This document shows, piece after piece, positions 24,460 to 51,728 of a DNA stretch of 64,000 bases. How positions within the stretch are numbered: position 1 is the first letter of the stretch; every line of letters begins with the position of its first letter. The notes under the pieces are model-generated. The model did not search any database. It was not told the origin of the DNA and worked only from the letters and a program-made list of their open reading frames with translations. The stretch is from Ministeria vibrans ATCC 50519 (taxonomy: Eukaryota; Protista; Filasterea): NCBI GenBank assembly GCA_943704425.1, contig CALSCP010002128.1, positions 22,989 to 86,988 on the forward strand. The letters are read 5' to 3'. A program made the translations under genes and the position numbers.

Positions 24460-27400
24460 TCAACTTACACTCTCATCATTACCGGAGCCCACTGCCTCTG
24501 CCAGCGCCGCTCCAACATCGCGCAACTGGCGCTGCTGATCACGTCCGCAAATCTCGGCCAGTTGCATCACAATGTCCTGGAAGATAGGCCGCTGTAGACG
24601 GTCAGCCGCCCAGCACGACATCAAAATCTCCCACAGATCATCAGGAACACCCTTGGGACGCTGCAGACGGTCGCCGTTGGAGAATAACGTGAGAAGGCCG
24701 CTCGTAGGTACGCCCGAGTACGGTCGCACCATGCCGTACGACAGAATCTCCCACACACAAATCGCATAGGACCACGCTTCGCTCTCGCGGAAGTGTCGCC
24801 CCGACGACAGCACCTCCATTGCCATCCAGCGCACCGGCAACTGCGTGCCCTTGGGAACACGGAATCCCTCCTCCATCTCTGTTCCTTCCACACGCACCGC
24901 CAGTCCAAAGTCAGCAATCTTCACATTGCTGCCCGCAAACAGCAGACAGTTGCGCGCCGCCAAATCACGATGCAAAATGCCCTGGCCCACCAGATAGTGC
25001 ATGCCACGCGCAATCTGCAGTGCCATCGCGACCTTCTCCGCCATCTTCATGTCAAAGCTGGCCTTCCGCACCCGTCGCATAAATGTGCGCACATCACCAT
25101 ACTCCGCAAACGCACTCACAATCAGCCACGGCTCTCGGTCCATACACACGCCCGTCAGCGACAGTGTGTTCACGTGTGAAAAGGACGCCAGCAGATTCGC
25201 CTCGGCCACAAAATCTTCTTGATCCTTCTTGCTCGCATTCTCATTCAGCGTCTTCACCGCACAGTACGACAGCACTCCACGCGTATCGCGATGCGACGCC
25301 TTCAGTACAAACCCAAAGTTGCCCTTTCCCACCTCCATCTCAAAGGTCAACCGGCCCCGATCAAACTGCTTGCCCGGCAGACAGTTGTCCAAGTCCTCGC
25401 GATCATCGTCATCATCGTACCCACCCAGTCCATCCATTTCATCCATCTTCGGTAGTGCTTCAAAGATCCCCTTGTGTCGCTGTTGCTCCACCTCTTCCGT
25501 CTTCACCACCAAATAGTTTTGCACCTAAAAAAACAAAATCGCAACACACATATTGTTTAGTATAATTACTTCAATAATCCTAAACTTTCTCCCTCTCTCA
25601 CACACTCTCTCTTCAATAAATAAAAACTAATAATGATAATAATAATAAGAATTATTATTATTATTATTATTAATAACTATTATAATAATTATTATCATTA
25701 TTATTTTTGATATTATATTAATTATTAGTAAATGTTTTTTTATACCTCTGGGTTTCCATACTCATGCTGACGGTAGTCGCTGCTGAAGAGTGTACCAGTG
25801 TCGCCCTCGTAATCGTCGCCAATGTCCTTGTAGTCATCGTTGTCGTTGATAAGGTCCAGGTAGATTTCGCTTGCCTGGATGCCAGGCGCATTGTATAGCT
25901 CACTGGCAGGCACCGCAGGCACACTGAATGTCTGTGGTCGTGGACCCTTTGGCGGCGCCTGCTCTTCCTCTTCCTCTTCTAGTGTCACATAGGTACCACC
26001 CGCCTTGCCAGGCGCCGGTTCCACATAGCCAATGGACGAGGCGGCGTCGTTCGACTCGCCCATAGGCACACCAGCAAGCGTCAGCGCCGAGTACGGTCGG
26101 CCTGCACCGCGCCCACTCACCACAGTCGGCTCGTCTTCATTCGCATCCTCCAACATCACCCCATCCGCACCCACAGGTCGAATGCTGGCTCGGTGACGCC
26201 CAAACACAAGCGGATTGATCGTCTGGTCAGCATTCAATTCGTCCATCTCAAGTGACTCGTTGCGCGCACGCGACGAATCGCGCGTCAGCACGCTCTGCGA
26301 GTGCGACTGCTGACGAATCAACTCTGATCGACCCAACGATTTTCTCCGCACTCGGCGATGGCGCAACACCAACAGAATCGCCACCAACACAATGAGCAGA
26401 CACACAACGGCCGCCGCGGCCCCAATAATGATTGTGGTCGATCCGCTCGACGAACCAGAGCCGGTCACGGGCGCATTCACGTAGGCCGCCATTACACTCA
26501 GGTGCCTCAGCTGTCCAATCACATAGCCAGCCGTGGCATTCACTCGAACCATTTCAATTGCCTCAAACGGTCCCGAGCCCGACGACGCATAAATCTGCAC
26601 GCGACTCCACTCGTCCGCCGACAGAGTCGTAGTAATGCCAATGCGAAAAAGCACATAAGGAAGCGAAAAGGTCGCGCCACTCGGCTCCACGCGCACATAA
26701 CCACTGGCACGACGCTCAATGCCCGACGGATCCGTCGACAACGAGGGATCGCCGGCCGCCACAGTAAACACTTGGAAGATCGTCGGCGATGTCACACTGC
26801 CCAGCTTCACTTCAAGCTGCACTTGCAGTAAAGCACACGGTCCCGTCTCGCCGCCGTCAATCGTCACGTCAATCGTGCCGTCTGCGTATGCCGTGACACA
26901 CTCTGTGTCGTCCATACCTGTCTCGCACACATCACCTGTATAGGTTGCCAGACACGTACACGAATGCACTCCCTGCACCGACGTACACGTGCCAAAATTT
27001 TGACAGGGGTCCGACGCGCACGCATCAATAAAGGAGTCGCAGTGCGTGCCCGTGCGCTGCGCCGTGCACGTGCAGTCGTAACCCACTGCACCCGCACGCT
27101 CAACACACGTCGCTCCACCCTGACACGGCGACGACGCACAAAATGCAATGTCCGTCTCACACGCCGCACCGGTAGTGTCTGACAAACATGCACACGTATA
27201 GCCGGCAAGCTGGTCCGTACACGTTCCTCCATTGTGACACGGCATCGACGCACACTCGTCTGTCTCCGTCGCACACACACTGCCCTCGTAGCCACTTGCA
27301 CACGCACACGCAAACTGATTTATGCCATCTGTACATGTGCCCCCATTCTGACAGGGTGACGAAGCGCACTCGTCAATGTTCACAGTGCACAACGCGTCCG

Positions 27401-30400
27401 TGAAACCACTTGCACAGGTACAGGTGTACGCAGCAGTCCCATCAACACACGTTGCGCCGTTGTGGCACGGTGACGAGGCACACTCGTCAAGGGCCGTCTC
27501 GCACGCAACACCGCCAAAGCCAGTGCCGTCGCATGCACACGAAAAAGAAAAGACGCCGTCCGAACAAGTGCCACCGTTCTGGCACGGCGTTGAGGCGCAT
27601 TCATCCACATCCGTCTCACAATTGCTGCCCACATGACCAGTCGCACTACAGTCGCACGTGTAGGTCGCTGCGGATGGTGCCTGGCACGCTCCACCGTTGA
27701 GACACGGCGCACTCGCACACGGCGACGTCGGCTCCACATCACAGAGGGTCCCCACAAAGCTTGTACCAGTGCAATCACACGTGAAGCTGCCAATGCCATC
27801 GCTGCACACACCTGCATTGACACACGGTGACGAAGCACACTCGTCAATGTTCACGGTACACAATCCATCGGTGTAACCACTCGCACAAGTACACGAGTAT
27901 CCATTCACCGAGTCCACACACGTGCCCCCATTTTGGCAAGGCATCGAGGCACACTCGTTTGTATCCGTTGCACACAGACCCCCTTCGTAGCCACTTGCAC
28001 ACGCACACGCAAACCCATCGACAGCATCGGTACAAGTCGCCCCGTTTTCACACGGCGACGAAGCGCACTCGTCAATGTTCACAGTGCACAACGCGTCCGT
28101 GAAACCACTTGCACAGGTACAGGTGTACGCAGCAGTCCCATCAACACACGTTGCGCCGTTGTGGCACGGTGACGAGGCACACTCGTCAAGGGCCGTCTCG
28201 CACGCAACACCGCCAAAGCCAGTGCCGTCGCATGCACACGAAAAAGAAAAGACGCTGTCCGAACAAGTGCCACCGTTACGACATGGTGACGACACACACT
28301 CATCCACGTCCGTCTCACAATTGCTGCCCACATGACCAGTCGCACTACAGTCGCACGTGTAGGCCGATGTGGTTGACGTCTGGCAAACTCCACCGTTGAG
28401 ACACGGCGCACTCGCACACGGCGACGCCGGCTCCACATCACAGAGGGTCCCCACAAAGCTTGTACCAGTGCAATCACACGTGAAGCTTCCAATGCCATCG
28501 CTGCACACACCTGCATTGGCACACGGCGACGAAGCACACTCGTCAATTNNNNNNNNNNNNNNNNNNNNNNNNNNNNNNNNNNNNNNNNNNNNNNNNNNNN
28601 NNNNNNNNNNNNNNNNNNNNNNNNNNNNNNNNNNNNNNNNNNNNNATCACAGAGGGTCCCCACAAAGCTTGTACCAGTGCAATCACACGTGAAGCTTCCA
28701 ATGCCATCGCTGCACACACCTGCATTGGCACACGGCGACGAAGCACACTCGTCAATTGGCGTGCATACAACCTCTTCGCCTTCCCACACGCCATTTAGAC
28801 AAACTCGATTGACGAGCGAACCCGATCGTGCTGTTCCCACATTGCATGACTGCGCACACTCCACCGAGTCAATGGTGGTCGCGGGACATGCACCCACACC
28901 GTTGGCAGGCGCAGCCAGTGCCGGACACTCGGGCAGGCAGGTGCCAGTGGCAGAAGACCAGGCGCCCGTTGACAGACACTGCGACACACCGTCACCGCTC
29001 AGTCGTACTGAGCCGGCAGTGCACTCGTGCACACACGTATCATTCAAACGACCACGCGTACATCCCGTGCCGCTCAGCGTCGAGTTGGTCAGCTGAGGTA
29101 TCGTCAGGGGTGCACAGAAACCATCTTCGAGTGTAGCACACGTGGCGCCCGTGTAGCCCACGCGACAGTTACATGTGCCACCGATATTGTCGCAAATGCT
29201 AGGCAGAGTACCCACACTAGAGCATGTACATTGCGTACAAGAGGTCTGTGGACCTTCCATCGTGGGATGTCCAAAAAATCCCGTTGCACAGCTGCACATG
29301 TACGTGCCATTCAGGTTGTTGCAGACGTTTACATTTGAAAGGCACGGGAGGCCTTCGGTACACTCGTCAATGTCCTCGTCGCACGTGTCGCCCGTGTAGC
29401 CACTTGGACAGGTACATGTGTACACACTGGTCGATCCATTGTCGACACATGTCGCGCCGTTCGCGCACGGGGTCGTGAAACACACAGCAAGACTAATCTC
29501 GCAAAAGGTGCCTGTGAATCCCGGCGAGCATAGACACGCACCAGTGCCCAACGCCCCCTCGTCACACTCGCCGTTGAGACATGTGCCACACCTCAGACAA
29601 CTGGCACCATAGCGGCCAACGGAACACGAGTCGCACGCACCCGAGCCTTCCACACCGTCGTCACATGCCTGATTCACGCAGAAAGCACTACATGTGTTCA
29701 AGCACGACTCACCGTAACGCCCCGCAACGCAATCGTCGCAGTGCACCCCCTGAAACCCAGTCGCACACTCACATGTGTAGCCGGAAGACGTGTCTGCAAA
29801 GGAAACGCACGTGGAGCCATGTTCACACGGATTCGACGCGCACGCATCAGAAAGCAATGAGCAGTCGGCGCCCGTTGTGCCTGCCTGACACGCACATGAA
29901 AATGTAAACTGCTCGGGCGCTTGCACACAGAGACCACCATTGACACAGGCGGGCGACGGTGACTGTACCTCGTGAATACCGGCGCGCACATTGATGCCGT
30001 CTGGCGTGGTGAATGTGCCACTGACAACACTCGCCGTGGACAGCAAGCTGGTAACAAGCTCGGGACAGGCCGTTAGCGTCGCGCCATTGTTAGCAATCGA
30101 CAGAAAGCCACCAATTGACGTGATGTTAGAAAGTCCCAATATGTCACGCAAATTGCTGTTGAACGCGACGCGGAAGAAGCCGCCCACAGTCTGGAGCGCA
30201 GAAAACGAATCGAGATGGGTAATGGGTAGCTGGAAGGCAATGTTGACCGAACCACCAATGGTGGTGAGCTGGTGCACAAAGTCAAGCGACTGCATATTGA
30301 TGTTGCTCGTGCAGTACAGATCGCCAGTAAGCGTCGTCAACGACCGGCCCAGTGCGTCCGCCGACGTGAGCACGCCGTTGCTAACAAGGGTCAGCGAGCC

Positions 30401-33400
30401 CAGAATCTCCGTCACATTGTCAAGTCCATCGAGCGACGAGAGCGCTCCGTTCGTCTCCAAGGTCAAATTTCCATTGATCGACGTGAGTCCCGACAAACCC
30501 TCAATGGAGGTGAGTGCCGCATTCGAGCGCAACACCAGTCCACCAACATACTCAAGATTTGCGAGTTCATCCAGCGTCGCCACATTCGAGTGGGCTGTGT
30601 TCTCCAGCGTGAACACCCCAGTCACGCGGCGCAGCGTCGACAGTACCGCCAACGACGTGATTCCCTGACTGGACGGCGGCGAAATGGTCACGTCGCCCAC
30701 AACGACTTCGCAGTTGCTCAATTCCGATACAAGATCCGCTTGTGACAAAATAATACCCCCCACAACACACGGAATGAATGTCTCACACAGAGTCCCCGAG
30801 CGACGAGGTGGACATGTGCACGTGAAAGAGACAAAGCCAGCGCTGTGAACCACTTCAACACAGGTCGCACCCGACGTGCATGGCGACGAGAGACACGGCT
30901 CAAATAAATCGGCACAGACCTCGCCGACATATTGCGTCGCGGAACAGTCGCACACAAACGACAGGACACCGTCGGTACACACGCCACCATTCTGACAAGG
31001 CGACGAGAGACACTCGTCAATGGCTACGTCACATTGGTTCCCAGTAAAGCCGGTGTCGGTGCAGTTGCACACGTACATGGAAAGCGACGGTGTTGTACAC
31101 AGACCCGCGTTGCGGCATGGACTCGACGCACACTCGTCAATGTCCGTATCGCACGTGACACCCGTGAAGCCTCCGATGCAGGTACACATAAAACCGCCGC
31201 CAGAGGAGGCCGGCAACGGTGTGCACGCGGTCGACGAGGCAACTGCACAGGGCGACGAAGCACACTCGTCAATGTCCACGTCGCATGCAGCGCCCGTGAG
31301 ACCAGTGGGACACAAACAGGTAAAGGAATCACCATTGGCAATGCACACGGCGTCACCCGAGCACGGCGCGGTACTACACGCATCAATTTGCGTACATCCA
31401 GGCGCGCCCGTAAACCCCGGTGGGCAAAGACACTCATCGGCCAAGCGCATGTCCACCCACCATCGGCGCAAAGAGCCTGAATCCACATTATAATTGTCGT
31501 GGATCCCCAAGATAATATTGCTATCAGTCATCTGACAGTCAAACACCGACAAGGGTGTTTCGGGTCGGTAGTTTCCCGTGTAGGGTGCAATGCCTGATGA
31601 AATGGGTACACCGGCTCGATCCGAAAACACCGTCGTCACCATATTATCGCCTGCATTGCCGCGATTCTCGATCAGCACCGAGTTCTGATTCCCATGATAC
31701 AGTGTCAGAGTGAGATCACCCATGTATGAGTGATACAGCAGGTCGACGGTCACTTCCAGAAAGGTAATGTACTTGTTTGCGGGCAGATTCAGTGTCGAGT
31801 AGACAGTGTCTGAATCCAGAATGGCCAGATTTTCAGTTTTGGTGAGCCGGACGCCTTCAATTTCGCAGAACCAGCCAAAAAAGGGCGACTGACAGCGACA
31901 CTCAAAGGAAACGGCGCCTGCCGAGCGACAGGTGCCCCCATTGCGACAAGGATTGCTCAGACACGCGTCGGTAGGCGTCTCGCAATGATCACCGACATAA
32001 TTTTGCGAGCACTGGCAGGTATACGCCAAGTGAGATGGCAGACATGTGCCGCCGTTCTGACATGGATTCGAGTCACAGCTGCGCAAGTCCTGCTCACAAA
32101 GAGCGCCCGATAATCCCGACGCACAGAAACACGCAAACAGTCCGGTGAGTTCGTCGACGTGACACACACCCGCGTTCTGACACGGACTCGATAAGCATCC
32201 ATCGCTGAGCTGACATTGCGAGCCGGTAAATCCCTCGACACAAAGACACGTCGTGTGTCGCTCCGCAAGTGGAATGACCATGTTATCTTCAAAACACGAA
32301 CCACCATTCTGACACACCGTATGTGCACACGTGCTACCCGTGTTGCCCGAGGGACAGTCCACCGGACACGAGATTGTGTTTTCACCACCAAGGCAAAACC
32401 CGTCGCCACAGGTGAGCGACGTCACAGCGCCAATGGAGATCGAGCTGAGTCCCCACTGACCCGTTGTCGCATCCATGCGGGGCTGCCACCAGCGCAGACG
32501 CACACCCTTTACACGAGCACTCGCAGGTAGCACCACCTGCGCCAGGTTGAACGAGGCGTACGCGCTCGCTTCGAGCTGCTCGATCTTCGTCCAGAGTGCC
32601 CCGCCGTTGGTCGAATAGAAAAGTCCCACCCAGGCATCGGAGGCGGCGGCCGGAGGTACACACACCCCGGCAGCCAAGTCGCCGGATGTGCTGCCAATGC
32701 GCAGGGCAAACTGCACCGATGTCACCGACGTGAGATCCATGTCGACAGTGTCGAGGAATCGTGCTTGAGTGCCGTTAAAAAGCGCCACACCACTGGAGCT
32801 GCAGAGGAATCCAAAAGCAATGCCGGGTGACCAGTCACTAAAGTGCAACGAAGAAATCGACCCAAAGCCCGTCACCGAAAGGTAAGTGGGCAAAGCACGC
32901 GACACGACCGCACACGACGAGCCCGAGTAGCCGGCGTCGCACTCGCATCCGCCGTTGCATCGACCGTGTCCATTGCACATGTCGGGACACGTGCTGAACG
33001 CCCCAAAGGCAAAGTCGCCAACGACGATAGCACGCGACTCGGCTCGTGCCGCCTCCACTTGTGCACCACTCGCGTCGTTCAGACGCACACGGACTCGCAC
33101 ACGTTCCTCCGCCGCACCAAACAGAATCGGCAACAACACACGCTTGGAAGCAAGAGAGGTCACTCCTGCAACGGCACCGTTGCCCGCGACATCACAGCTC
33201 GCGTCCACGCACGTCGGTGTTGCTGTCCACGTGACACCTCGATCCGTCGACATTTCCACCACGGCAACGAGCTCTCCGTCGCGAACAGGAACACTCGCAG
33301 GACAGCGCGAGAACAGATTAAACTGCACAAAGCCCGTGGCGGTCGGCACAGTGCCCACCGTCGCCGAGGTCCACAGGCGTATCGAGTCTATGGCCCACAC

Positions 33401-36400
33401 GTCCAGTGTGCCATCCGTGACTCCGGCCTGACTCCAAATCAGCTGAGTGCTGGCAGTTCGCGCAGCCGCCGGCAGCGCCACCGAAATGGTGTTGGTGCCA
33501 CCAAACTCACTGCGTCGATAGGTTCCCAAAGACAGGGTGGACGAGCCACCGTCGAGCGAGTATTGCAGCTCAACGGGCTTGTTTTCGTCGACTTCGGCGC
33601 AGTTGGGACCACCCGTGCCGTCGGCAAGGTACAACCAAAAGGTCACATGGTTAACCGAGCTCAAATCAATGTTGGTGGTGCGTGCAATGCGCGTGAGGAA
33701 GCCTGAGACGCGAAAGAGCAAAGCGTTGCCGTTAACCCCCTCTTGCCCACATACCTGCGATGGCGAGGCGCCTTGCACAAGTGCCCACTTGCTCGAATCA
33801 ATAAAGCTCGATGAGAAAGTGTCGTAGCTCGTGCTGCTCTCAGTCAGGGCAAAGCCTGTCGAGGCGTCCACATCAAGTGTGACCATGGGCACCACATCGC
33901 CGTCGAAGCCGGACACAAGGGCGTTCACAAGATCCACGCCAGGCCGTGAAACACCACAGGCAACGGTTGTGTCGGTCGTGTTGGTGGGCGCCAAAAACTG
34001 CCAGACACTGTCGTCCACCGACTCCACCGATGCAATGAGATTGTCGTGCATTGACCGCCGCAACACGGATGTGTCGCCCAGGTAGACGTTGTCCAGGTGC
34101 CAGGAGCCAAAGACGACGCGTGCCGGACGAAGTGTCCACATGAAACGCACGGATCGGTCGCGCGCCACGAGCGGCAGCGTGATGGAGTGATGACCCGACC
34201 GCGAGAGCGACTCAATCGTGGTCCAACTCTGACCACCATCGAGAGACGACGCCACAGAAATGGCACCCACCGTGTTTGGTGGTAGTGACACAGAGCACTG
34301 TGCATCGGAGACAGTCGGCAACTGAATGTCAAACTCCATCATCGACATGAGGGTTGTGTCTAGGTCGGGTGTGACCGCATGCGTGAGCATATCATTGTAG
34401 CGGAATACCACCTGCTGACCCGATGTCAGTGCACATGTGTCGTTCTGCGAGACCACTGCCCCGCCAGTCAGTAGCTGAAATCCAGCCATGGCGCCCAACG
34501 TTGAGTCGCGCGAAGGCCAGTCAAATGTGGAGCGGAACGAACGTGTCGACAACGTGCCTGTTTCCACAGTACACGCGGGCAGAGCATAGCCCGCGTCGCA
34601 CAGACATTCGCCTGATGGCTGACACATGCCATGGCCCGAGCAAAGACTGGGACAATCGCTGCCCACATACAAGCGCTGAAGAGCCCACGTCACCGCGACC
34701 TGAGGACCACTCGTTTGCCACACTCTCACCAGTGTTGCGTTCGAAATGGCCAATGGAAACTGAACAAGACGAACGCCCGTCCACTCATGGCTTGACCACG
34801 ACGACGGAAGTGACCATGTCGCCGACGTGACCGACGTGGGACCACAGTCACCGGCGGCCGCATCACAATCGTCAATGAGGTCGCGCCACGTCGCACCCGA
34901 GTCCACCGAGTACTGCGCCGCGACGCGCAGCGTTCCTTGAGGTGACACTGTCGTCGTTGAAGGGTTCGCAGCCACACACGAAACCGACAGGTATGCCTGG
35001 AAGAGACCGTTTGGAAGCGGCGAGAGCATCTCGCTCGTGATACCGCGGGGTACTGGAAGCAAATAGCCGTTGGGCAGGGATGCTGCACTGGCCACAAGAA
35101 GTGTCTCTTGCGCAGCAACATTCGCACAGATACTCGCGGCAAGCGCACTCTCCATGTTCGACTCGAACAACACAGTCGTCTTTGACATGTCGCCAGGAAT
35201 AGTCGCGGACACCAACACGGCCGATCCGTCCACAAGCTGTGGTTCCATGCCCACATAGAAGTTATCAATCTGCCAAGGGACTGTGCGGGGCGACGCCCCC
35301 GAATCAACAGTAAACCAATCGCTGGGAGCCTCCCAGGAGAGCGAGTTAAAAAGTGTGACGTTGGTGGAAACAATCGCGGCCGATTCGGCCGTTGCAAACG
35401 GTCCAGCTACCAGAAAGTGGAAGCTCGCGCCACCTGTCTGCTCGAAATACTCGAAGAGCATAAAGTATGTTTGTGTCGTGTCCAAGTACACGGGAGTCTC
35501 ACCCACATGTGTCTCGCTATTGCTCGGCTCCCAGAACTCAACGATAAGACGCTCGTTCAGGTAGATACGGACACCGTCATCCGCAATGGAGCCAATGACG
35601 TACCAACCAGTCGCGTTGGGTCGAAGGAAACTCTGCATGCGCACTGAGAAATTGTCGGTCACCCTAAGGTCCAGCTGTGTAGGAGCACCGGTCGTACCGG
35701 GCAACCGTGGCGACGACAAGATGACCTCGCTAGCGGCGGGACTCTGCAGGTTCACGTTGGTGTACGAGGTCGCAAGGACACCAGGAACATCAAAATCGCC
35801 GACGAGGTGAGGCAGCCCAAGTGCTTCGTTGGCCGCCATCTGTGGCCCACGCCATCGCAAAGACCATCGCCATGGCCCCTTGTCGTTGCTGTACGACAGG
35901 AGCAGAGGGACGCTCGTGTTGGCCGCAAGCCAAATGGGAAGAGGCTCTTGCTCCACGAAAACGAGCCCATCCCAATACTTGTTGGCAACTAGCACGTGGT
36001 CCACGTAAACACTCGCCTCTCCAATGGAATCCACCGTAAACATGTAGTATCCATCGCGAGGAGGTGTCAAAGTGGCCGTGTACCTCGATTCGATCTTGGA
36101 AAGACAGCTGGTAGTGGACACAGGCAAGCACGAAGTGAGCGACGTGTGGTCTTCACTAAGAAAAGCGACAGCACCCGAGCCAAGTGATGGCAACGCGTCA
36201 TTAGACTCGGCGTGGATCGCGGAGGCTGCAGTGGACGTGGACCGCGAGCGCAAACGCAGTCGTACCGCGCGACCTCGCGCATCCTGCGGAAGCCCCACAT
36301 GGATGGGTTTGGCATAGGAAGCCTCGTTGGCGGACAGCTGGTGCAGCAAAGTCCACGTGACGCCACCATCCGTGCTAAACTGCACCAGAAGTCGCTCGCC

Positions 36401-39400
36401 ACCGAGACGCGCTGTAAAAATGACGCTCGTGGCCAAACGCAAGTCCATGTCCACTGTGACAAGCATGTCCGCGAGCGAGAGCACCGAGTTATCATCAAGT
36501 CGGGTCGATGCAAGGGTCACAATGCTCGTGGCATTGTCACTCGTGAGCCACACCCCGCTGTTTTGCAGGAGAGTGCCCGTATCGAATGTACTTTCGAGTG
36601 ACGTCGTGGACAGCGTACGCGAGCATATGTTGGTACCGTTGTTAAGGGTGTACCCCTGATCACAGACGCAGCTGCCAGAGACAGAGCAGCGGCCAAAGCC
36701 ACCGCAGTAGTGATGACAGTCACCCAAAAAGAGTGTCCCAATGGCAAATTCACCGGCACGCTGCAGCGAAGTGAACCGAAACATGACAGAGCTGCTCGAA
36801 GCAACTGGAGCAATCTTGGCGAGAGGTATAGTCGCACGGCTCCATCGGGAGCCACCGCCACGAACGTGGGCACGCTCATAGAGGGCACCATCGGGCTGTG
36901 CCGAGCTGCATATCGACAGCGACTGCTGACTCACTGTCATGCACTCGCTGCCCAGCGGCAGCCACGAACGGCCCATGTCTGTACTGTACTGCACCAGGAG
37001 ATCCACTGAGGAACTCTGCGCACACCCCAGATTGTAGTGGAATTGTAGCACTGCATTGGGACGGGACATGTCGAGGGGCCAGGTGACAAGCTCTGGCTGA
37101 GCGTCACTTCCGGTTGTGGCCGTCGAGAACACCAGCGCATTGGGGGCGGGCGAGCCGCAAAAACTCGAGGCAACCGCTCCGTTGGTCATCGAAAACAACT
37201 GTGTGGGTACCAGCGTCGCAGTCGAGGTCGTGTTCAGACTGAACTGCGTTGAGGGCACCAAGCTACCGCCCACACGAAGATGGTCAATGGTCCAAGCATT
37301 CGAGAAGTTGGCATGATCCACGCGCAGTTGGGCAATGCGGAAGCGCACTGCCGGACCGCGCGCCTCACTCGCAATGGGCACGCTCAGCACACTGGCAAAG
37401 CCCTGGGGCACTTCATCGAGCAGGGTGTGTCGCGAATACGACACACCATTGTCTCGTGAGTAGAGCAGAAGCAACGGCGCGTAGGTGTGGGTAACATACT
37501 CGCTCGCACAGCCCGACATGTTGCCAATGCGCATCGAAATAAACTGAGCATTGCGAGAGTCCATGGCGGCAGTGGTGACGTGACGTTCGCCCGCCTGGTC
37601 AAAGAGCAGGTAACCACCACCGGCGCCAAGTTGCGTGGCGCTGCAGGTGTACGTCACCATCTGTGGATCGGTCACGATGACAGCGCCGCGCAGGCGATCC
37701 ATCGAGATCGCCGTGCTCTGCATGGCGACGCTTGTGTTCGCCCAGTTAAAGTCCTCGGCAAGCGCAGTCGGCCGTGCTGTTGCGTACTCGCACGTGGTGG
37801 TGTTCACTTGCACCGCATTTGCATCGCATACACACACACCCGAGGGAGTGCAACGGCCAAGCCCGTTGCAATAGCCCGGACAGCTATTGCCCACATACCA
37901 GTTGCGCATGGCAAACTCGTTGGCGGAGGTCAGACCCGTTGCATATGGCTGTGTGACACGGAAGCGAAGCGTCGACGACAGTGGCTCATCAAAGCGCTCC
38001 ACAAGTGGCACGGTGAAGCGACGCCACTCGCTAAACTGTGTGGGAAGCAACACGGGCGACGACTGGTCAAAGTAAAGCTGGCACGCCTCGAGGTCGCAAC
38101 CCGTCTCGGAATACACGGGCGTCCAGGTAATACCCAGGTCTGCTGACTTCTCCACCACTATCGCATCGGCAGCGGTGGCAGAAGGTGCCACATTCGTGCT
38201 AGCACACGAGCCAACTCGTGCATCAAACTGAAGAGTCGTGCCAGCCGCATTCACGGATGGATCGGCCACGCCGGTAGATACCTCAAAGACCGCAACGGCC
38301 TCAATTGAGTCAATCGCAAACGAGTCAATGAACGCCGCCGAATAGGCGGTCTGCTGCCAACGGAAGGAAACCGATGCACTCTGCGCAAGCGGATTACGCC
38401 CCACAAGAGAATACGTCACGGTGCGTTGGGAGGTAACTCCATATGTCGCAATGACAGTGAAGGTGGAGCCAATCACGTAGCCAAATTGAAGGTACTCCTG
38501 AGATGAGGCATCGGGTGTTTCGCAATCTGTAAAAGAACTGGCGGGTGCCATGATGACAAACGAAATGGTGGTCCAAAGACGCGTGTCAAACTTGACCGTC
38601 TCCAACACGCGCGCGCTGCTGCCGGTAAACTGAAGAAAGTTACCGGTGCCCAAAGCACAGCCGGCGTTACCATTGTAAATAGTGGTGCCAGAGTTGACGG
38701 CAAAAACACTCGAGGGAACTCCCGCTGTAAAATCAGCATTAAGCACAACCTGCCTCTGCTGGTCGAGACGGAAGACACTCTGCACAACGGCAGGTGTGGT
38801 CTCAAACATGCGTACGCCTGTGGTGCCGGCAAAAACAGCAGCCGGCTCGCTCGAACCACAGTAGTCACTCGCAATGTCTCCGTTGGGTTGGAAAACAGAG
38901 ACTTCGGGACGGAATTGCGAGACGAAATTGTCGTTGAGAATCTCCGCAAGAAGATCGAGCTGGCCCACAAACAGATTATCAATGCTTATAATCACCCCCC
39001 TGTGAGTAACAGGGTCCACTGCGGTAATGTTGAAGTCGAATCGAATTCGTGTCGCTGCGCTTCTGGCGCCCACCGGGAGAGCGACGTACACATTGGTAGC
39101 CGGCGCGTGGGGCTGGAGCTGAATCGTAGCAAGGCTCACATAGTTGATGCCGCCATTCGCCGAGTAGAGAATCTCCATGGGAGGCGGAAGGTCAGTCGAG
39201 GCGGTGCACGGAATGGCGCGCAGCTGCACTGACGTGGCGCTCGTCGTGTCCAGATCGCGTGTCTCAAGACGGCGCAAGTATGGTCCGAAAATCGCCAGCT
39301 GAGTGTTGTCGGCGAGTGGACCGCAACCACTGATGGACAACCCACTGTCGCCGATCAAGGGGTAGAACACAGTTGACGTATCAAAAGTGAGGAATTCGTC

Positions 39401-42400
39401 CTTGAGCTGCGAAGACAAGGGCGACACAAGCTGGCAACCATTGTTGCCGTCCGCCTCAAAGCCCACATCGCACTCGCACACTCCATCGGCACGGCACGAG
39501 CCGTGTGAGGCACACAACTCCTTGCACGTGGCACCTAAGTAGAGGTTGCGCAACGCCCAGGCGGACGCTGAGTCGAACCCCGTGAGCGACGGAGGCACAG
39601 CAATGCGCACACGAAGCGAGCTGACACCCGCCGGCATCATGTACGTGCGACGGTAAAAGTTGTTTTGGTTGGCGGCGCCTGTCTCACGACCAAATTCGGT
39701 CCAGGTACGGCCCTGGTCGGCCGAGTAGGTAAGAATCAAGGGTTGCATTTCGCCAGCGTCCGCGCGGCTGCACCCCATGCCCAACTCAAATTGAAGAACG
39801 CCACGACTCGCACTGGTCGTCGCCGACAGGTCCACGCCAATGGTCTCAATATGCTGCTGACTGGGTGCAACTGAGTTGAACACCAGTGCCGATGTGTTGA
39901 CAGTGTCCGGGCAAAACACGGTGCGTTCGCCGCCCGGCCAAAACTCATACTGATTCGTGGTGAGGCCCATTTCGTAGTCGTCGTACAGGTCCGTCATAGA
40001 GGGTTCGCCCACAAAGAACTGATCAATGGCCCACGAGTTCTCGACATCCAGTGGGCTCGTGGGCACACCAAACTGTTGGAGTCGCAGACGCAACGACGAA
40101 ACACGCGCGTTGGCCGGGAGATCTAGCGTGACAAGTTGACCCTGTTGGGTGGTGGTGCCCAGCGAGGCGACAGCGCCCCACCAGACACCGCCGTTGGTCG
40201 AGTACATCAGGTCAACAATACGGCTGGTGGGCGCTGTCGAGTCGTTACCAAAGGCTCCAAAGGACAGGTAAAACTGCACAAAGTGGGCGCTGGTCGCATC
40301 AAAATCGATAGTCTCCAACACACGGTTCGATGGGTCGCCCGACATGTCCATGTACGCACCATTGAACCCATAGAGATACTGTGGCAAATGCCGCTGGACA
40401 GCTGCACCACCCGAGATACGAGACCAAATGAAGGCGTCCGATTGAGCAGAAGGTGACGAGGCAAAATCATCACGGAGAATCGAGCGCAGGGGCGCGGTCG
40501 GCACACACGATGCACTCTGCAGAGTGTAGCCTGCGTCGCATTGGCACACTCCCGTGAGACAGGAACCATGACCGTTGCAAAAGCCTGGGCAATCGCTGCC
40601 CACATACAATGATTGAATTGACATGGGCGCGGCATTGGCAGGCTGCTGGATGCGCAGACGGCCCGTGGCAGGCGCTTGTGAGGGTACGGGGAGAATGACA
40701 CGCGAGAGTTGAGGCACCTCGGACGAATCTAACTGGCTGACCATGGGTGACCAGAACAACGACGTGTCGCCTGGGCTGGGGGGCACAGGAAACTCGGAAT
40801 AGAGGCTGGCAAACGAGACACCTTGATCGGCACTGACAAGAACCGAGAGGGCCGAGTCTTCGCGTCTGGTGGAGTTGAGAGGGAACGCTTGAGCACACTC
40901 GCTCGCATTGCCTCCGACCGCAACATTTAGCTCGATAAACGAACCGTTGGCCGACGGTACAATAGACGGTGCGGCGTAGTTGAAGGTAATGTCGGAAATG
41001 GACCAGTCATCACAATTCAGACACGAGAAAATATTCTGATACCAACGAAATTCCACGCTTGATCCACGCGCGTTTCCAGACAATACAAAGCCGGCATCAA
41101 CTTGCTCATTTTGGTACGACCGAATTGAAGTATAAGCCGTTGTTGAACCCCCGGCCATGTTGCGGTACATGAACGTTACGGTTTCACTCGAGTCTAGGGC
41201 TTCACATGCCGAGCCTGCAAAGTTGCCACCTGCATACTTAAATCGCACCGAATAAACATTGGTCGTGTCGAGTCTGACCGTCATTTCTCGACTGGATGAC
41301 ATCAAGCTGAAACGAAAGCCGGCGATTCCCGAGCAGGTACCGGAAGTATAAGAACCGCCAGAGAGCGTAACAATCTCAGGACTGGACGACACAATCGCCA
41401 ATAACACGGACGAGAGAATGATTGAGGGTACAAGCGAGACATCCATAGTGTTGAGCTGACGCATGCCGTTTCCACTGAACACGCCCACTCCACTGGCAAC
41501 GGTTGTGTTATCGCACGTGTACGGCAAAGAAACACTCGTGTAGGAAATGCCGGGCGAAAAAAGGAGCTCGGGAGAATTCACTTCCGCAGGTAGGATGACT
41601 GAGACGCGCGACAGGGGACTGGGCAAGTCGGTGCGCAGCAAAAAGTTATCCATAGCCCAGGCGTCGCGCGTGGGCTCGCCAAATCCAATTTGTTCGAGAC
41701 GGAATTTGACGTAAGACTGGCGGGAGGACGGCGGCAGCGCCATCGTCGCTTGTGTGGTGGTCTCCGTTGGAAGCGAGAGGTTGCCCACAAAGGACCATGT
41801 GAGACCATCGTTGGTCGTCGACAGCACTGTGATGATGCGCCAGGCGACAATGCCTGTCGATGTACACGCCGAAGCGGGTGCAGCAGGACCGGTCGTCAGC
41901 TGGAACATGAGTGCGGTTGCGGCGGTGCTGTTCACATAGACGGTTTCGGCGCGTCGCAAGGACACACCGCTAAAGAGCGCCTGGTACGTGTCGGCAATGG
42001 GTGCTGCCCCACAGCCGTTGGCGGTGAGCGTCGCACCGTCGACATGACTCCACACGCTCGGGGAGAAGGCAGAGTTGGAGTCGAACGAGTCGCGAAGCGA
42101 CTGAGGAGGGTACGTGGTCGGTAAGAGAGAGCACGCTCCCAACGAATTCAAAGCAAAATTGGCATCGCAGGCGCAAGCAATGCCACCGACCAGGGTGCAT
42201 GTGCCAAATCCATTGCAGGCGTCAACACAGCTGGTGCCCAAAAACAGATTGTCGATGGCCCATTCGTTGGAGCTCGAGAGCGCTGTGGGGACGCGTGGGG
42301 CAAGGCGCACCAGTGTGCTGGGCGACACAGCAGCCTCGGGCAGATTGAGAGTAAAACGACGGTAGGTGTGAGGGTAGGCGGCGAATGAGGCGGCGCTCAC

Positions 42401-45400
42401 TTCGGAGGGCAACTGGAAATCTTCCGAGCATGTTTCCAAGCCAATTTCGCAGCCGGTCGAGAAGGGTGCCCACGAGTTGCCCATGTCGGTCGAGAAAGAC
42501 ACGACCAGGTCGTTGTCGCGCGACAACTGCGCGCCTGTGCTAGTGTTGGCACAGCCACCGAGAAGAGCATCAAACTGAAAGACGGTACCCTGTTGCACCC
42601 GTTGCACCAGGACACTGTCCATGGCCCACTCGGCGGTTCCCGCACCGCTATGTTGGATTTGGAGCCACTGGAAGAGCACTGCGGGTGCTTGCATGGCCGA
42701 CGTGAGGGGCACACGAACGAGAGTGGTGGTGGGGAAGTCGTTGATGTCGAGTGTGCGAATCTCTGCAAAGGTGTTGCCGCCGTTGACGGAGTAGCGCAGA
42801 CGGATATTTTGCGATGTGGCCGAGGCCGTGTTACAGTTGCCGCCACCACCAAATCGGAAGTAAAAGGCCAGCTCGGGCATGTTTTGCGTGTCAATGGGAC
42901 GTGTGACGACCAGACGTGGAACCTGGGCGCCATTCGCGAGCAGATAGTTGCCCTCAAAGAGAGGCGAGCATTGCGACGACGATGTGACCACTTGAGCACC
43001 CGACACTTGGGACCATTGAGCCGAGGATGGCCCTGCATTGGGCGCGTCCAAGTCGAAAGTGACATCAAAACGTGTCTCGGTGTCGGCCACGGCAACAAAG
43101 GGAGCCGTGATGAGCTGACGTACACCCCTGGTGCCGCCAAAACGCATCACCTGCGATGAGGATGAGCAGTAGACTGCCGTGGCATCGCCGTTGGGGTACG
43201 ACAAGAGGGTGGTCGGGGAAAGCGGGTCAAAGTTGTCGCTCAGTGAAGAGACCACGGGTGTCGGGCCCAAAAAAAAGTTATTAATGGACCACGTACCACC
43301 GGACGTGTCGGGCTGGAGGATGCGAAAGCGCACCGTCTCGTTGAGAGCACTTACCGAGTAGGCCACGTCAATGCGGTAGCCTGCGGCGCCGGCCACAGCC
43401 GCCTGTGTCGTGCCCAAATGCGTCCAAAGCATTCCGCTGTCGGTGGAGTACCACACTTGAACGCGCATTTGGCCGTTGGAAGAGGCGCTCGCGGACGCAT
43501 AGTCGGTGCACTCGTCGGCCGTGCCCAAGCCGTTGCTCCACGCGGAGGCGCGACCCACGGCAAGCGAGAAACGCAGTTGGTTGTTGCTGCCGGTCGTCTG
43601 TGACAGGAGCACATCGCGCGTCTCGAGGTAGCGACGCGCAGTAGAATTCATGATAAACTGTTCGTTGTCGCCGATGGGCCCGCACCCTGTGAGGGAGCTC
43701 GTGCCGCCCACGATAGCATGCCACACGTCGGTGCGCACCGTTGGCGAAGAGAAATTTTCAATGAGTTGCGACGGAAGGGAAGCCTGAACGGGACCACACT
43801 CTGTATTGGAAAGTGCTGTAAAGTCCGAGTTGCACGCGCATACGCCACCGCTGGTGCACTGTCCGCGTCCTTGACATGCACCCGGACAAGGGTTGCCCAC
43901 AAGCAACGACTCAACGGCCCACGCGTTTGCGGTCAACAATTCCGTGTTGGCGGGTTGCGACAGACGAAAGCGCGTGGCAGACGAGACTGCCGCGTCTCCC
44001 AGCGGCACATAGAGAGTGCGCAGCGTGTTGAAGGCGCTTGGATAGAGCGTTGACTCAAGGGGTACCTTGACACACCTATTGAGAAGGGAGGGGACACAGT
44101 CGCCGTTGACGAGTGTCCACGAGGCACCGTGGTCGACGCTCATTTCGACGGAGACGGCCGGCTCGTCAAGGGGCTCGCTAGTGGCGGAGCATGACCCACC
44201 CTGACGCATGGTGACGGCAAGGTACGACTCCTGAGTGGTTTGCACCTCGAGCGAGACATCATCGATGGCCCACATGTCTGCATTGGCCACACCCAAGTGT
44301 TGCGCCTGTCGCCACGTAAAGAGCGTGGCATTGGTGCGAGCAGCCAGGGGAAGAGGCAACTCGATGCGCGTCGTGACGACGGTCGACGTGAGTGTAGCCA
44401 GTGTGGTCGACGAGAGACCATCGTTGACGCTAAACGACACAATAATGTTGCTTGTGGTCGTGGTGTCGGCGTCACACGCATCGACGCCCGAGCCCGGCGC
44501 AAATTGAAAAAGAAAGACAAGCGCAGAGGCAGCGCGTGTGTCCATGGGTGTCGTAAGCGCCTGACGGGGAGAGGTGGAGGTAAAGAAGCGAAGTACATGA
44601 GAAGAGAATGGCGCCGCTTGCATGGGATCCAAGCAGGGACCGTCGCTGGAAATAGAACCACCCAGCACAGAGGCCCAGCGGGGCGCAACGGGCACCTCAC
44701 CCACGGAAAATTCGTCAAAGTTGTCGTACACGGGCTGATCGAGGAAAGTCATGCCGCTCACGGTGAGGTCGCGTGTGGTGAGTTGACGCACGCCAAAGTT
44801 GCCATCAAACACAACAGCGTCGCTGGTGGGATTGCCGCAGAAGGCCTGGCCACCGACACCGTTGGGGGCAAAGGGAAAGGAGTCAATGTCAAGATCGGCA
44901 TTGGGGAAAGAGTTGAAATCGAGTGAGGCAGGGTTGGCGGCAAACTCGGGTGCGACCCCGCCAATGAGGACGTTGTCAAGAAGCCACGTTTCGTTGGCAA
45001 ACACAGCACCAAGCTGACCAAAGCGGAACTGTACCATAGGCTTGCGAGCTTCAGTGGGTAAGTCAATGGCAAACGGGTAGCGAGCGGGCAACGACGTGTC
45101 ACTGCGATCGAGCGAGATGGTGGCAAGGATCGTAAACGTGGTGCCTGCGTCGAGACTGTACTCAACGTGAAATGCAGGCGGTACTTGAGCACTGGCGGAT
45201 GTCGGGTCGGGACAGTAGCGACCCAAAACAAACTGCAACGAGACAGCCTCGACGGTGTTTAGCAGGGCGGTGGCAAGCGAACGACGATCTTGTGCGTCGA
45301 AGAACAGCGCCGGTCCGTCAGCCATGGGAAGACAAGGTTGGGCGACAAGTTGGACGCCGGTGTCGTAGCGCCAGCGAGACACGTCCAGCGGAAACGAGTC

Positions 45401-48034
45401 AAAGGTGTCACGCAGCGAGGTAGGCAAAAGTCCCGCGTTGGGGGCACACGAACCCGAACCCGGATCGAGGGTGAATCCCACGTCGCAAGTGCACGTGATG
45501 CTAGGCGACTGGCACTTGCCGACGCCCGAACAGTAGAGGGGACACGCCTGGCCAATACGCAAGTTGTACAGCGCATACTGATTGGTGTTGGTGTAGGCGG
45601 TGGCGTCGGGCTGAGAGATGCGGAAGCGCGTTGAGGCCGAGAAATTTTCGGCCAAAAGAACAACGGTAATGTGACGCGGCTCGGCCGTGTTTGTGATCAA
45701 CGCGGCGGTGACCTTGTAAAATGTGGTCCAGCTGATGCCACGATCGAGCGAATACTCAATGTGCAGGTCGTCCAGGTAGGAGACTGCCGTGAGTGGTGAC
45801 GACGAGCACAATGGGCCCATTTTCACAGAGAATTCGAGCGAGGCGTCGCCCGTCGTGTTGAACGCTGACAAGTCCATGTCGATGGTGGACAGAGAGCGCA
45901 TGTGAGTCGTCGAGGTGGGACCAAACAAAAGAGTGTTGGGAGTGCCGCAAAAGGAGGCAATCTCGCCGCCCGGATGGAAGAGAAAGAGACTCTCGTCGAG
46001 CGCGGCGGACGCGGTAAAGTCCACGCTAAGGTCGGCAGGAGCATCGGCAGGCACCAGAGCAACATTGTCAATGGTCCACATGTCGCTGTTGTCACTGGGA
46101 GTCGATTCAAACTGCTCGAGGCGAAACACAACGGCGGGCAGATTAGCAAAGATGCTGGTGAGGGGCACCGACACTTGAGTGGGATTCAGGTAGGAGGAAG
46201 AGGGCAAGAACACTCCGTCGGTGAGAGCACGCCACGAAATGCCACCGTCGATGGATGCGAGCAAGTAAAGTGCGTATTGATCCGCTGTGGAGGCGACGGT
46301 GCAGCCCGGAGCGCCGCCATACTTGAGGCGGAACTCAAAGGCATAGGCAAGAGACGTGTTGAGCGGCGGGGTAGTGAGGTAGCGCACATTGGGCACGTTG
46401 TTTCCGCCCAGATCTACGGCGGCCCCGTCGTACACGACACCGCAGGCTGGAGTGCGCACTGTGCCGCCGGCGAGGGTCCAGCCGCTGGGGAGAGCGCCGT
46501 CGTTAAAGGTGAGACGCAGATCCGTGATGGCAGGGACATCTACGGGGGCGCAAGTGGTGTTGACATTGGCGTAGTCGGGTGCGTCACAGATGCAAATGCC
46601 TGATGCGGCAAGGCACGCGCCAAAGTTGAGGCAGGCGCTCAAGCACTGCTCGCCAATGTAGACATTGTCAATGGCAAACGTGTTGGTCGAGGTGACGTCG
46701 CTTCCGCCGGATGGGAATGCCTGACGAATGCGCACAAGAACATCCGAAGCGGGCACGCCCAAAGGTACGGTGACACGTCGCCAAGCGAGTGTCGAACTCT
46801 GTGCTGAGATCGCCGAGCGATCAAGGAGTAGTTTAGAAGCCCGATCCGCCAGCCCATCCGAGGCGACAGCCTGAGTGTAGGTGACACCACGATCGGTAGA
46901 CACCTCGACGACAATGGCGGCATTGCTGCCAAGTGAGTCGGGCAGAGCACACGCACTGGTGCCGGTAAACAGGTCAAATTGAAGAAAGGTGTAGGTGGGT
47001 GGGATGTAATTGCCATTGAGTACTCCGTAAACGTTGGAAACGCGGGCGATCACGACCGAGTAGAGTCCCCACGTATCCAGGTTGGCGCCAGTGCTAGACG
47101 ATTGCCTCCACCGAAACTGGGTAGCGGAAGTCTTAGCGGTCGTCGGCAGCGTGATGACCCGGTTGCGGGTAGCCACTGCGCCAATTTGAGTTTGCGAGTC
47201 AATTTGAACCCACCTTGTTGAAGTACCCGAGCTGTAATACTCGAGCACAATATCTTCTCCGAACTCGAGAGTGTTGCAATAGCCTATGCGGAGCGAGTAA
47301 GAGAGTGTCGAGGCGGTACGCGTGTCAATATAGACAGTGGTCGCTTCGCGAGGGCCTGACGCTCGGAATGTGAGTACGGATGGAGAGGTGCAAATGTCAG
47401 TAACGACAGCACCCTGAATCCTTGACCATTTGAGGCTGGATGGAGGCGAGGTGAGGGGGTCTTCGAAAAGCGGTGCGCTCGGGTCGCTGACGGGTGAGGA
47501 AATGGTAAAAGGACGGATAGTAGCGGAACGCTCGGCGGACGTCGACGTGCCTGTAAAGGCAAGGGTGTTTGTACGACCGCAGTAGGGTTGAACCGAGGCG
47601 CCATTGATGGTTGTCCACATTTCGTTGTTGATGGCGCCCGTCTCAAAGGAATCGTCGTATTGCGCGGCCGAGGTCGCATTGCCCACAAAAATCGTGTCGA
47701 TATACCAACCGTCGGTGAAAATGCTGTGGAACGGGAAGGAAGGAGTGCGTTCGGGGAAGAGTCATCGCGCGACGCTAGAAATCGTTTGGGTTACCTGTAC
47801 GCGGGTTGTTCCCACTTGAACTGGACGGTGGGGCCGCTCGGAATAGCCACGCTGATAAAGGTGGCGCCGGACGCGGAGTTTGCGTACGAAGCAATGGCGA
47901 GAAAGGGCGACGCGACATCGGTCCGATACGACAGCACCACAGGCGCTGTTGAGCTGAATGGCAGGCAGGAGCCCGTGCCGCCCAGCAGGATCCAGAAGCT
48001 CATGTGGGTTGCGCCTCTCGTGTCCACTTGCGGG
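24460..48034 (-). CDS. Giant Reelin-repeat/EGF receptor tyrosine kinase, 5'-incomplete; exons 48034-47795, 47723-25746 (contains the N gap) and 25524-24460
   Basis: At least 10 Reelin-like repeats (Asp-box SxDxGxTW, FRxxQ, WxIDxV, central EGF), 2 PA14, P-domain, L-domain, 2 Sushi and Ca-EGF arrays. TM segment IIIGAAAAVVCLLIVLVAILLVL. A phase-0 intron leads to the kinase exon with GKGNFG, AVK, HRDLAARN, DFG and LPVRWMA. Confidence 0.88.
27361..28757 (-). repeat. Near-identical 699-nt (6-EGF) tandem duplication inside the RTK, running into the assembly gap 28549-28645
   Basis: Sequence from 27361 recurs at 28060, and 28646-28757 repeats 28437-28548. Confidence 0.9.
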
Positions 48035-48161
48035 CTATTTTAAAGCAAGACAGAGAGAGAGAGAGTGTGTGTGTGTGTGTGTATTTTTTTTGAGAACGCG
48101 ATGTTGTCTTTTTTTTTTTTTCTCATCGGTCATACGTTTTAGGTTTGTGCAACATTTTTCA

Positions 48162-51100: not shown

Positions 51101-51728
51101 ACATGCACCCCAAGCGATCCAACCACGACCCGGCTCGCGTGCCTACCCGCCACCGGGTTTTCCAACACAGAGTAGTCTGCAAATGCAACAGTTTCAGCAA
51201 ATGCAAATGCAGCACCAAGCGCGTCGTCAACAGATGCCTAGCGTTGCTCCTCCAGACAAGCGATCCCTCACCCTCCAGCAGCAGCACGAGTTTCGTATGC
51301 GGCTGCAGCAGGAGCAACAGCATGCGATGCAACAGCACCGATTGGTGCAACAGCGAGAAGAAATGCTCAGGCAACAACACGCGCAGCTGCAACAGCAGCG
51401 TCACGAGCGTCTGCAGCAAGTGGAACAACAACGGTCTGCGGCAGCCAACGGCAAAGCGGGGGGCGCGGCAGCAACGGTGGTTCCCGTTGCCGCCCCCACT
51501 GTCGACCACCAGGAGGAGACTCTCGACGAGGCTGCCAACAATGCCTATTACGAGGTAGAGAAGATCCTCAACTATCGTGTCAAGGGTCGCGAACGCCAGT
51601 TCCTCGTCAAGTGGGCTGGCTACACCTCCGAGTGGAACACCTGGGAACCCGAACAGAACCTCGCCAACAACATTGTCTTTCACAAATTTATCAAGGTGAA
51701 CAATCTGCCGCCGCCAGCCAACTCCTAA
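48162..51728 (+). CDS. ELM2-SANT (MIER/RERE-like) corepressor with a Q-rich region and C-terminal chromodomain; exons 48162-49248, 49460-49621, 49685-49767, 49851-49993, 50135-51728
   Basis: Acidic N-terminus; QLLWS...VDEFV...LTECDYDTSLA (ELM2-like); WTYKEILLFEDAIESHGK...IMDFYYTWKKTER (SANT); YEVEKILNYRVKGRERQFLVKWAGYTSEWNTWEPEQNL (chromodomain). All splice phases are compatible. Confidence 0.8.

Follow-up and report, generated by a model that had tools for sequence, protein, structure and literature searches.

Animal Reelin is a secreted protein that carries a reeler domain, eight repeats and a basic tail, and it has neither a transmembrane (TM) helix nor a kinase domain. Lysines of its repeat 6 mediate the binding to ApoER2/VLDLR. 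Each repeat is a composite unit in which two distinct subrepeats, A and B, flank a module of the epidermal growth factor (EGF) type (A-EGF-B), as in the mouse structures 2DDU, 2E26, 3A7Q, 6A48 and 7LYU and in the reelin-like proteins of hemichordate, horseshoe crab and shark. A recent review describes Reelin as resembling "no other protein" and as absent from invertebrates (PMC11808024). The clades of unicellular holozoans have each built their own receptor tyrosine kinase (RTK) ectodomains, among them the LRR-RTKs of Capsaspora, the hyalin-repeat RTKs of choanoflagellates and the I3-RTKs of ichthyosporeans, in which a conserved tyrosine kinase has been shuffled onto a long, repetitive, lineage-specific ectodomain (PMC4342544). 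In the present study, we analysed a stretch of 64,000 nucleotides of Ministeria vibrans ATCC 50519 (contig CALSCP010002128.1, positions 22,989 to 86,988; hereafter the window), in which one minus-strand gene probably encodes a type I RTK of approximately 7,700 residues with an ectodomain of Reelin repeats, a TM helix and a kinase domain. This protein follows the same principle as the clade-specific RTKs, whereas a Reelin-repeat module has not been reported for those families and the protein is far larger than theirs.

The gene extended from 48003 to 24460 on the minus strand in three exons separated by two GT..AG introns (Table 1), and the minus-strand frame without a stop codon comprised 6,535 codons. 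Exon 2 (47723-25746) covered approximately 22 kb in scaffold coordinates and was broken by a gap of N alone, in agreement with the original prediction, a reading of the letters of the window that had described these 22 kb as one exon apart from the gap. Removal of intron 1 rebuilt the end of a subrepeat, ...FKWEQPAYS/IFTDGWYIDTIFVG, with the spacing from Q to W that is usual in the subrepeat consensus. The pieces summed to 6,429 + 897 + 354 = 7,680 amino acids (aa) on the assumption that the flanks of the gap overlap, and the protein is longer if the gap hides EGF blocks, as expected from the earlier estimate of about 7,700 aa or more; the pieces were summed, not joined, and the domain and homology searches were likewise run per exon or per piece and not on a spliced, joined protein. 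The open frame, the Pfam matches, the subrepeat profile and the hydropathy agreed with one another, supporting the earlier view that a single reading unit links at least ten A-EGF-B repeats, EGFs, one TM helix and a tyrosine kinase.

Pfam searches assigned 23 stretches to Reelin_subrepeat-B (PF21471), as 16 matches (E 1.8e-240, 784 bits) and seven further matches (E 1.3e-111, 368 bits) against a cut-off of 27 bits, and also returned PA14, Recep_L_domain and many EGFs on exon 2. With a profile derived from the repeats of the protein itself, 26 full subrepeats were recovered in exon 2 and one partial subrepeat in exon 1. The subrepeats were approximately 20% identical to one another, suggesting that they are old. 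EGFs with six cysteines lay in ten of the subrepeat linkers (linker pattern oABABoABoABoABABoABABABoAB), which gave ten A-EGF-B repeats, four plain (S) and six long (L), arranged as L S L L L S L S S L. In an L repeat, a segment of approximately 100 residues with the first strands of A was followed by a complete extra subrepeat, the rest of A (from profile position ~25), the EGF and B; the inserted subrepeats were all complete and B-like. The two PA14 domains were nested in subrepeat B of repeat 8, ahead of its last strand (WQIDNFYVG), and they represent a second kind of nested insertion beyond the six split subrepeats.

The ectodomain comprised approximately 7,100 residues and contained approximately 37 EGFs in all, some 27 of them after the repeat region. 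The Receptor L domain in this later part is of the leucine-rich type known from EGFR and the insulin receptor. The term sushi-like for the two Cys-rich modules in Table 1 was read from the sequence and had no Pfam match behind it, and neither the membrane-proximal domain nor the domain of approximately 140 aa (31418-31870) had a sequence match in Pfam, NCBIfam or PDB. Furthermore, Pfam found no reeler domain in any piece of the protein, the 5' end of which may be incomplete.

One S repeat aligned end to end with mouse Reelin R5-6 (3A7Q; E 1.4e-37), and one L repeat matched 3A7Q, 7LYU and 6A48. When scored with separate A and B profiles made from four animal Reelins, the subrepeats before the EGF favoured the A profile in nine of ten cases and those after the EGF favoured the B profile in all ten (19 of the 20 overall), and the six inserted subrepeats were all B-like by these profiles. 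This retention of A and B identity points to homology of the composite unit, beyond the fold alone. A predicted model of an L repeat (pLDDT 62) gave the Reelin N-terminal region (6A48, E 2e-29) as its top Foldseek match, and the best eight matches were all Reelin, with bacterial carbohydrate-binding modules (CBMs) following. The ten repeats are true Reelin repeats, homologous as whole units. The Reelin fold that the original prediction had assumed for them was borne out by the alignment with R5-6, by the A and B assignments and, at the confidence of the model, by the Foldseek matches.

The N-terminus of animal Reelin consists of a full subrepeat followed directly by a truncated A, whose match begins only at profile position 32-60, and this is the layout of the L repeats. 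In the crystal structure of the Reelin N-terminal region, two incomplete subrepeats make one (PMC11808024). The split layout with an inserted subrepeat was thus present in animal Reelin at the start of the array and in the window protein six times. The ten repeats showed no one-to-one best match to R1-R8 of animal Reelin, suggesting that the ten-repeat and the eight-repeat arrays grew independently. By these comparisons, the A-EGF-B unit and the split-subrepeat layout would predate animals. The window protein differs from animal Reelin in its ten repeats, the added PA14 and Receptor L domains, approximately 27 extra EGFs, the TM helix and the kinase; with a TM helix, with ten repeats that do not correspond to R1-R8 and with no reeler domain found, it does not appear to be Reelin proper.

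The sole strongly hydrophobic segment was followed by the basic stop-transfer sequence RHRRVRRK. The piece with the kinase matched PK_Tyr_Ser-Thr (PF07714; E 4.4e-71) in Pfam, with 10 EGFs in the same searched piece. The catalytic motifs GKGNFG, AVK, HRDLAARN, DFG and PVRWMAME were complete, with AME in place of APE, and the activation loop DFGLAVRVEGTEMEEGFRVPKGTQLPVRWMAME was acidic and lacked tyrosine. The best named relatives of the kinase were Ror, MuSK, InsR and Met, at 30-39% identity, and the nearest relatives of solved structure were RET, MET, MER and ROS. The domain appears to be a kinase of receptor tyrosine kinase type, and activity is predicted from its intact motifs. The TM helix, the juxtamembrane segment and the kinase on the same strand, the canonical phase-0 intron between them and the receptor-type relatives of the kinase support the proposal made earlier that Reelin repeats serve here as the ectodomain of an RTK.

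A search with the subrepeat profile returned 4,246 proteins among 1.84 billion representatives, and none of the best 150, which were examined for kinases, had one. The best relatives were at most approximately 28% identical to the window protein. Within these limits, the architecture is as unfamiliar as the original prediction had stated, and the fusion of Reelin repeats to a kinase would be particular to the window protein among the relatives examined. The subrepeat proteins that could be identified included animal reelin-like proteins, a Bacteroidota protein of the type IX secretion system (T9SS) and metagenome giants, the latter two without EGFs. Databases list reelin-like proteins in hemichordate, horseshoe crab, nemertean, crinoid and leech. 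A literature search found no paper linking Reelin repeats to choanoflagellates, Capsaspora, unicellular holozoans or RTKs.

Three kinase-less membrane proteins with true repeats were found. The protein of the calcareous sponge Sycon ciliatum, an animal (LOC135828544; XP_065197058.1, 5,793 aa), likewise has A-EGF-B units, inserted subrepeats, a long EGF array and one TM helix, and its identity to the window protein was 28% across the last repeat plus the EGF region and 37-44% across the EGF array; in contrast, it ends in a short tail with NPLY and has no kinase. The protein of Salpingoeca infusionum, a unicellular holozoan (EP00049_P002869, 3,549 aa), combines a signal peptide with 12 Reelin subrepeats and a single TM helix, whereas its repeats centred on an EGF are fewer and its tail of 60-odd residues carries NPTY and no kinase. 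The third, EukProt P0130 (4,693 aa), likewise combines Reelin subrepeats (17) with EGFs, one TM helix and a phosphotyrosine-linked element inside the cell, and it has a signal peptide; it differs in a cytoplasmic SH2 domain in place of the kinase and in SRCR and pentaxin domains outside. Its architecture is unusual in its own right, and the name of the entry is formatted like those of choanoflagellate transcriptomes. Membrane-anchored Reelin repeats beside elements of phosphotyrosine signalling appear to recur in holozoans.

Two relatives of the kinase were considered as evidence of conservation and proved uninformative: P0002 (46% identity) lies on a 2.3-kb contig whose sequence breaks off just upstream, and P0003 (38% identity) is a small, GC-rich RTK that lacks Reelin repeats. 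The contig Logan SRR33270664 (5,011 bp, very GC-rich) encodes a small RTK with a Cys-rich ectodomain, a TM helix and a kinase 38% identical to that of the window. Neither the kinase protein nor a 31-nt junction pattern gave a match when scanned against the JGI metagenomes.

Several points weigh against the reading of the locus as one gene for a Reelin-repeat RTK. Among the subrepeat relatives, the kinase relatives and the metagenome scan, none shared the architecture and could thereby show its conservation; the model of the L repeat is of low confidence; the ligand and the activation mechanism are proposals; and the 5' end, the junction of exons 2 and 3 and the assembly gap each raise a difficulty of their own.

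At the 5' end, exon 1 begins within a subrepeat, and its Met precedes only a short hydrophobic stretch, FWILL, so that the gene may be truncated at its 5' end or have a further exon upstream. The candidate N-terminus MSFWILLGGTGSCLPF was weakly hydrophobic, belonged to the subrepeat and gave no convincing signal peptide. It is possible, though somewhat unlikely, that the gene is real and 5'-incomplete, with one or more upstream exons that supply the signal peptide and the opening strands of the first subrepeat. Exon 1 covered only positions 24-114 of the protein's own subrepeat profile (E 5.6e-10) and positions 31-110 of PF21471 (E 1.4e-4, under the curated cut-off), and its open frame extends to 48039 with a possible acceptor AG at 48036-48035, all of which would suit an exon further upstream. 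However, a divergent plus-strand gene apparently starts approximately 157 bp upstream, and the frames upstream of 48003 showed no exon resembling a signal peptide. The 5' limit of 48034 given earlier did not hold as a gene start, since this position coincides with the possible acceptor site and the sole start candidate is the ATG at 48003.

At the 3' end, the joining of the exons into one transcript is read from the genomic sequence, in the form of a GT..AG phase-0 intron. The three exons are probably spliced into one mRNA, and the intron lay exactly at the coordinates that the original prediction had claimed for it, 25745-25525. The donor GAG/GTATAA (25740-25746) brings an in-frame TAA directly behind the donor, which speaks against a single product if the intron is kept; retention of intron 2 would thus yield a kinase-less receptor like the sponge relative. 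It is distinctly improbable that the locus instead makes two products, a kinase-less Reelin-EGF membrane protein ending at the TAA past 25746 and a separately transcribed small cytoplasmic kinase (25524-24460). In its favour, the sponge and choanoflagellate kin are kinase-less receptors of just such a form and the kinase exon has internal Met codons ahead of the domain; on the other side, intron 2 is canonical and of phase 0, with a long pyrimidine tract and a GC content of 17% against 57-58% in the exons, the first 25 codons of the kinase exon contain no stop and continue the phase of the exon before it, and a receptor-type kinase by itself would have no targeting domain.

A contig of an independent metagenome assembly (ENA ERZ23497376, SCHR19-1_SAMN09406036_METAG-scaffold_6199) matched window positions 23738-25718 at 99.3% and appears to come from the same organism or a close strain; no paper was found that mentions its sample code. 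The kinase exon differed from it by a single synonymous single-nucleotide polymorphism (SNP) in 1,062 bp, and intron 2 by two SNPs and a 6-bp indel in 194 bp. The exon with its one synonymous change and the variable intron fit the pattern of a coding exon and a non-coding intron. The differences between the window and this contig were concentrated in intron 2 and in the 3' region of the presenilin gene.

The assembly gap lies within the EGF array. Its flanks, 28437-28548 and 28646-28757, were identical over 112 bp and encode the same EGF on the minus strand, and a third copy at 27738-27849 was 96% identical and exactly 699 bp from the copy at 28437-28548. Left of the gap stand two tandem 699-bp blocks (27850-28548 and 27151-27849) of six EGFs each, approximately 90% alike in protein, and this 699-bp repeat likely caused the gap. 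The apparent frame jump across the gap equals the 97 N plus 112, or 209 bases, a number not divisible by three. The gap may be either an unmerged overlap of contigs or a place where further 699-bp EGF blocks are hidden, the regular 699-bp spacing requiring 587 bases in the gap instead of 97; since both readings stay in phase inside the EGF array, the number of EGFs alone is uncertain. The order of Reelin repeats, EGF array and TM helix across the gap was also that of the sponge protein. A scaffold mis-join, in which the Reelin-repeat part (right) and the EGF-TM-kinase part (left) would come from separate genes with a near-identical EGF block in common, is suggested by the position of the gap in repeated EGF sequence with a third copy 699 bp off and by the tendency of scaffolders to err where contigs end in repeats. 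It is very improbable, because the flanks match each other at 100% but the paralogous copy at 96%, a pattern expected of a single locus or of overlapping contigs. In addition, each contig breaks off inside a gene, with strand and EGF phase shared by the two ends, and no stop, start or TM helix occurs on either side near the gap. The concern raised with the original prediction, that the gap might join two EGF-rich genes, appears not to be realised: the same EGF in the same sense stands on both sides.

Returning to the single receptor, we propose the following tentative mode of action. The N-terminal part would face outward in a type I topology, and binding of an extracellular partner would cluster the receptor. 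This partner would probably be a surface or matrix rich in glycans, since both PA14 and the CBM-like jelly-roll of the subrepeats belong to folds that bind carbohydrate. The clustered kinases would phosphorylate tyrosines of the juxtamembrane segment in trans, and these phosphotyrosines would in turn recruit SH2/PTB proteins. As the activation loop lacks tyrosine, regulation would not make use of loop phosphorylation.

The cytoplasmic wiring differed among the membrane-anchored proteins, with a kinase in the window protein, an SH2 domain in P0130 and NPxY tails in the choanoflagellate and sponge proteins. We advance as a doubtful conjecture that pre-animal Reelin-repeat proteins were at first membrane receptors coupled in cis to phosphotyrosine signalling, that secreted animal Reelin is a derived, shed form, and that its link to Dab1 and Src-family kinases is a remnant of this origin. 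The locus shows a complete Reelin repeat unit and the split-subrepeat layout in a filasterean, where they probably form the sensing portion of a receptor with a tyrosine kinase. Together with the sponge and choanoflagellate-type kin, it makes testable the proposal that the Reelin module is pre-animal and was first used in surface receptors tied to phosphotyrosine signalling. At approximately 7,700 residues, the protein would be an extreme case of the invention of RTK ectodomains by unicellular holozoans.

Table 1. Positions of the candidate receptor gene, its parts and its two closest neighbours in the window.
Feature	Position	Strand	Remarks
Divergent neighbour	47958-51728	+	Acidic low-complexity open reading frame (ORF) and chromodomain ORF; likely start near 48161
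Candidate exon 1	47795..48003	-	ATG 48003 is the sole start candidate; mid-to-late Reelin subrepeat
Intron 1	47724..47794	-	71 nt, GT..AG, phase 2
Reelin-repeat region of exon 2	32423..47723	-	26 subrepeats and 10 EGFs, ten A-EGF-B repeats
Two PA14 domains	35348..36145	-	PA14 E 1.9e-17, two stretches
EGF cluster, ~140-aa domain of no known family and more EGFs	30746..32422	-	No solved relative for the ~140-aa domain
Receptor L domain region	30023..30745	-	Pfam Recep_L_domain E 1.4e-11
EGF, laminin-type EGF, two Cys-rich sushi-like modules and first copy of the gap-flanking EGF	28646..30022	-	
Assembly gap	28549..28645	.	97 N between identical 112-bp copies
Fourteen EGFs, including two tandem 699-bp six-EGF blocks	26925..28547	-	
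Membrane-proximal beta-rich domain of no known family	26448..26915	-	Predicted model, pLDDT 41
TM helix (predicted)	26364..26435	-	19-residue hydropathy up to 3.4, sole such segment
Cytoplasmic juxtamembrane segment (predicted)	25746..26363	-	206 aa, 9 Tyr
Intron 2	25525..25745	-	221 nt, GT..AG, phase 0, 17% GC
Exon 3 (kinase exon)	24460..25524	-	Includes the stop codon; kinase domain ~24559-25350
Presenilin gene	21862-24351	+	Convergent to the kinase exon, ~108 bp between stops

The window was compact and held approximately 15 other genes, including those for INCENP, ALG11, a TIR protein, a cupin/JmjC protein, presenilin, a chromodomain protein, a DEAD helicase and a Fused-like kinase. The adjoining presenilin was closest to that of Capsaspora owczarzaki (84% identity in the core and approximately 40-45% in the flanks), followed by those of Pigoraptor chileana (74%) and P. 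vietnamica (68%) in the core. As all three are Filasterea, this one gene places the organism within that group, though distinct from C. owczarzaki ATCC 30864, and supports the earlier assumption of a probably unicellular organism. The ALG11 exon showed holozoan/animal affinity only, at 60-66% identity. The upstream region of approximately 157 bp that the receptor gene shares with its divergent neighbour holds (AC)n(TC)n repeats. Further assembly gaps lie outside the gene at 17422-17429 and 20393-20527, and the minus-strand ORF 12132-13208 encodes a TIR domain (PF13676, E 2e-11) in this protist genome.

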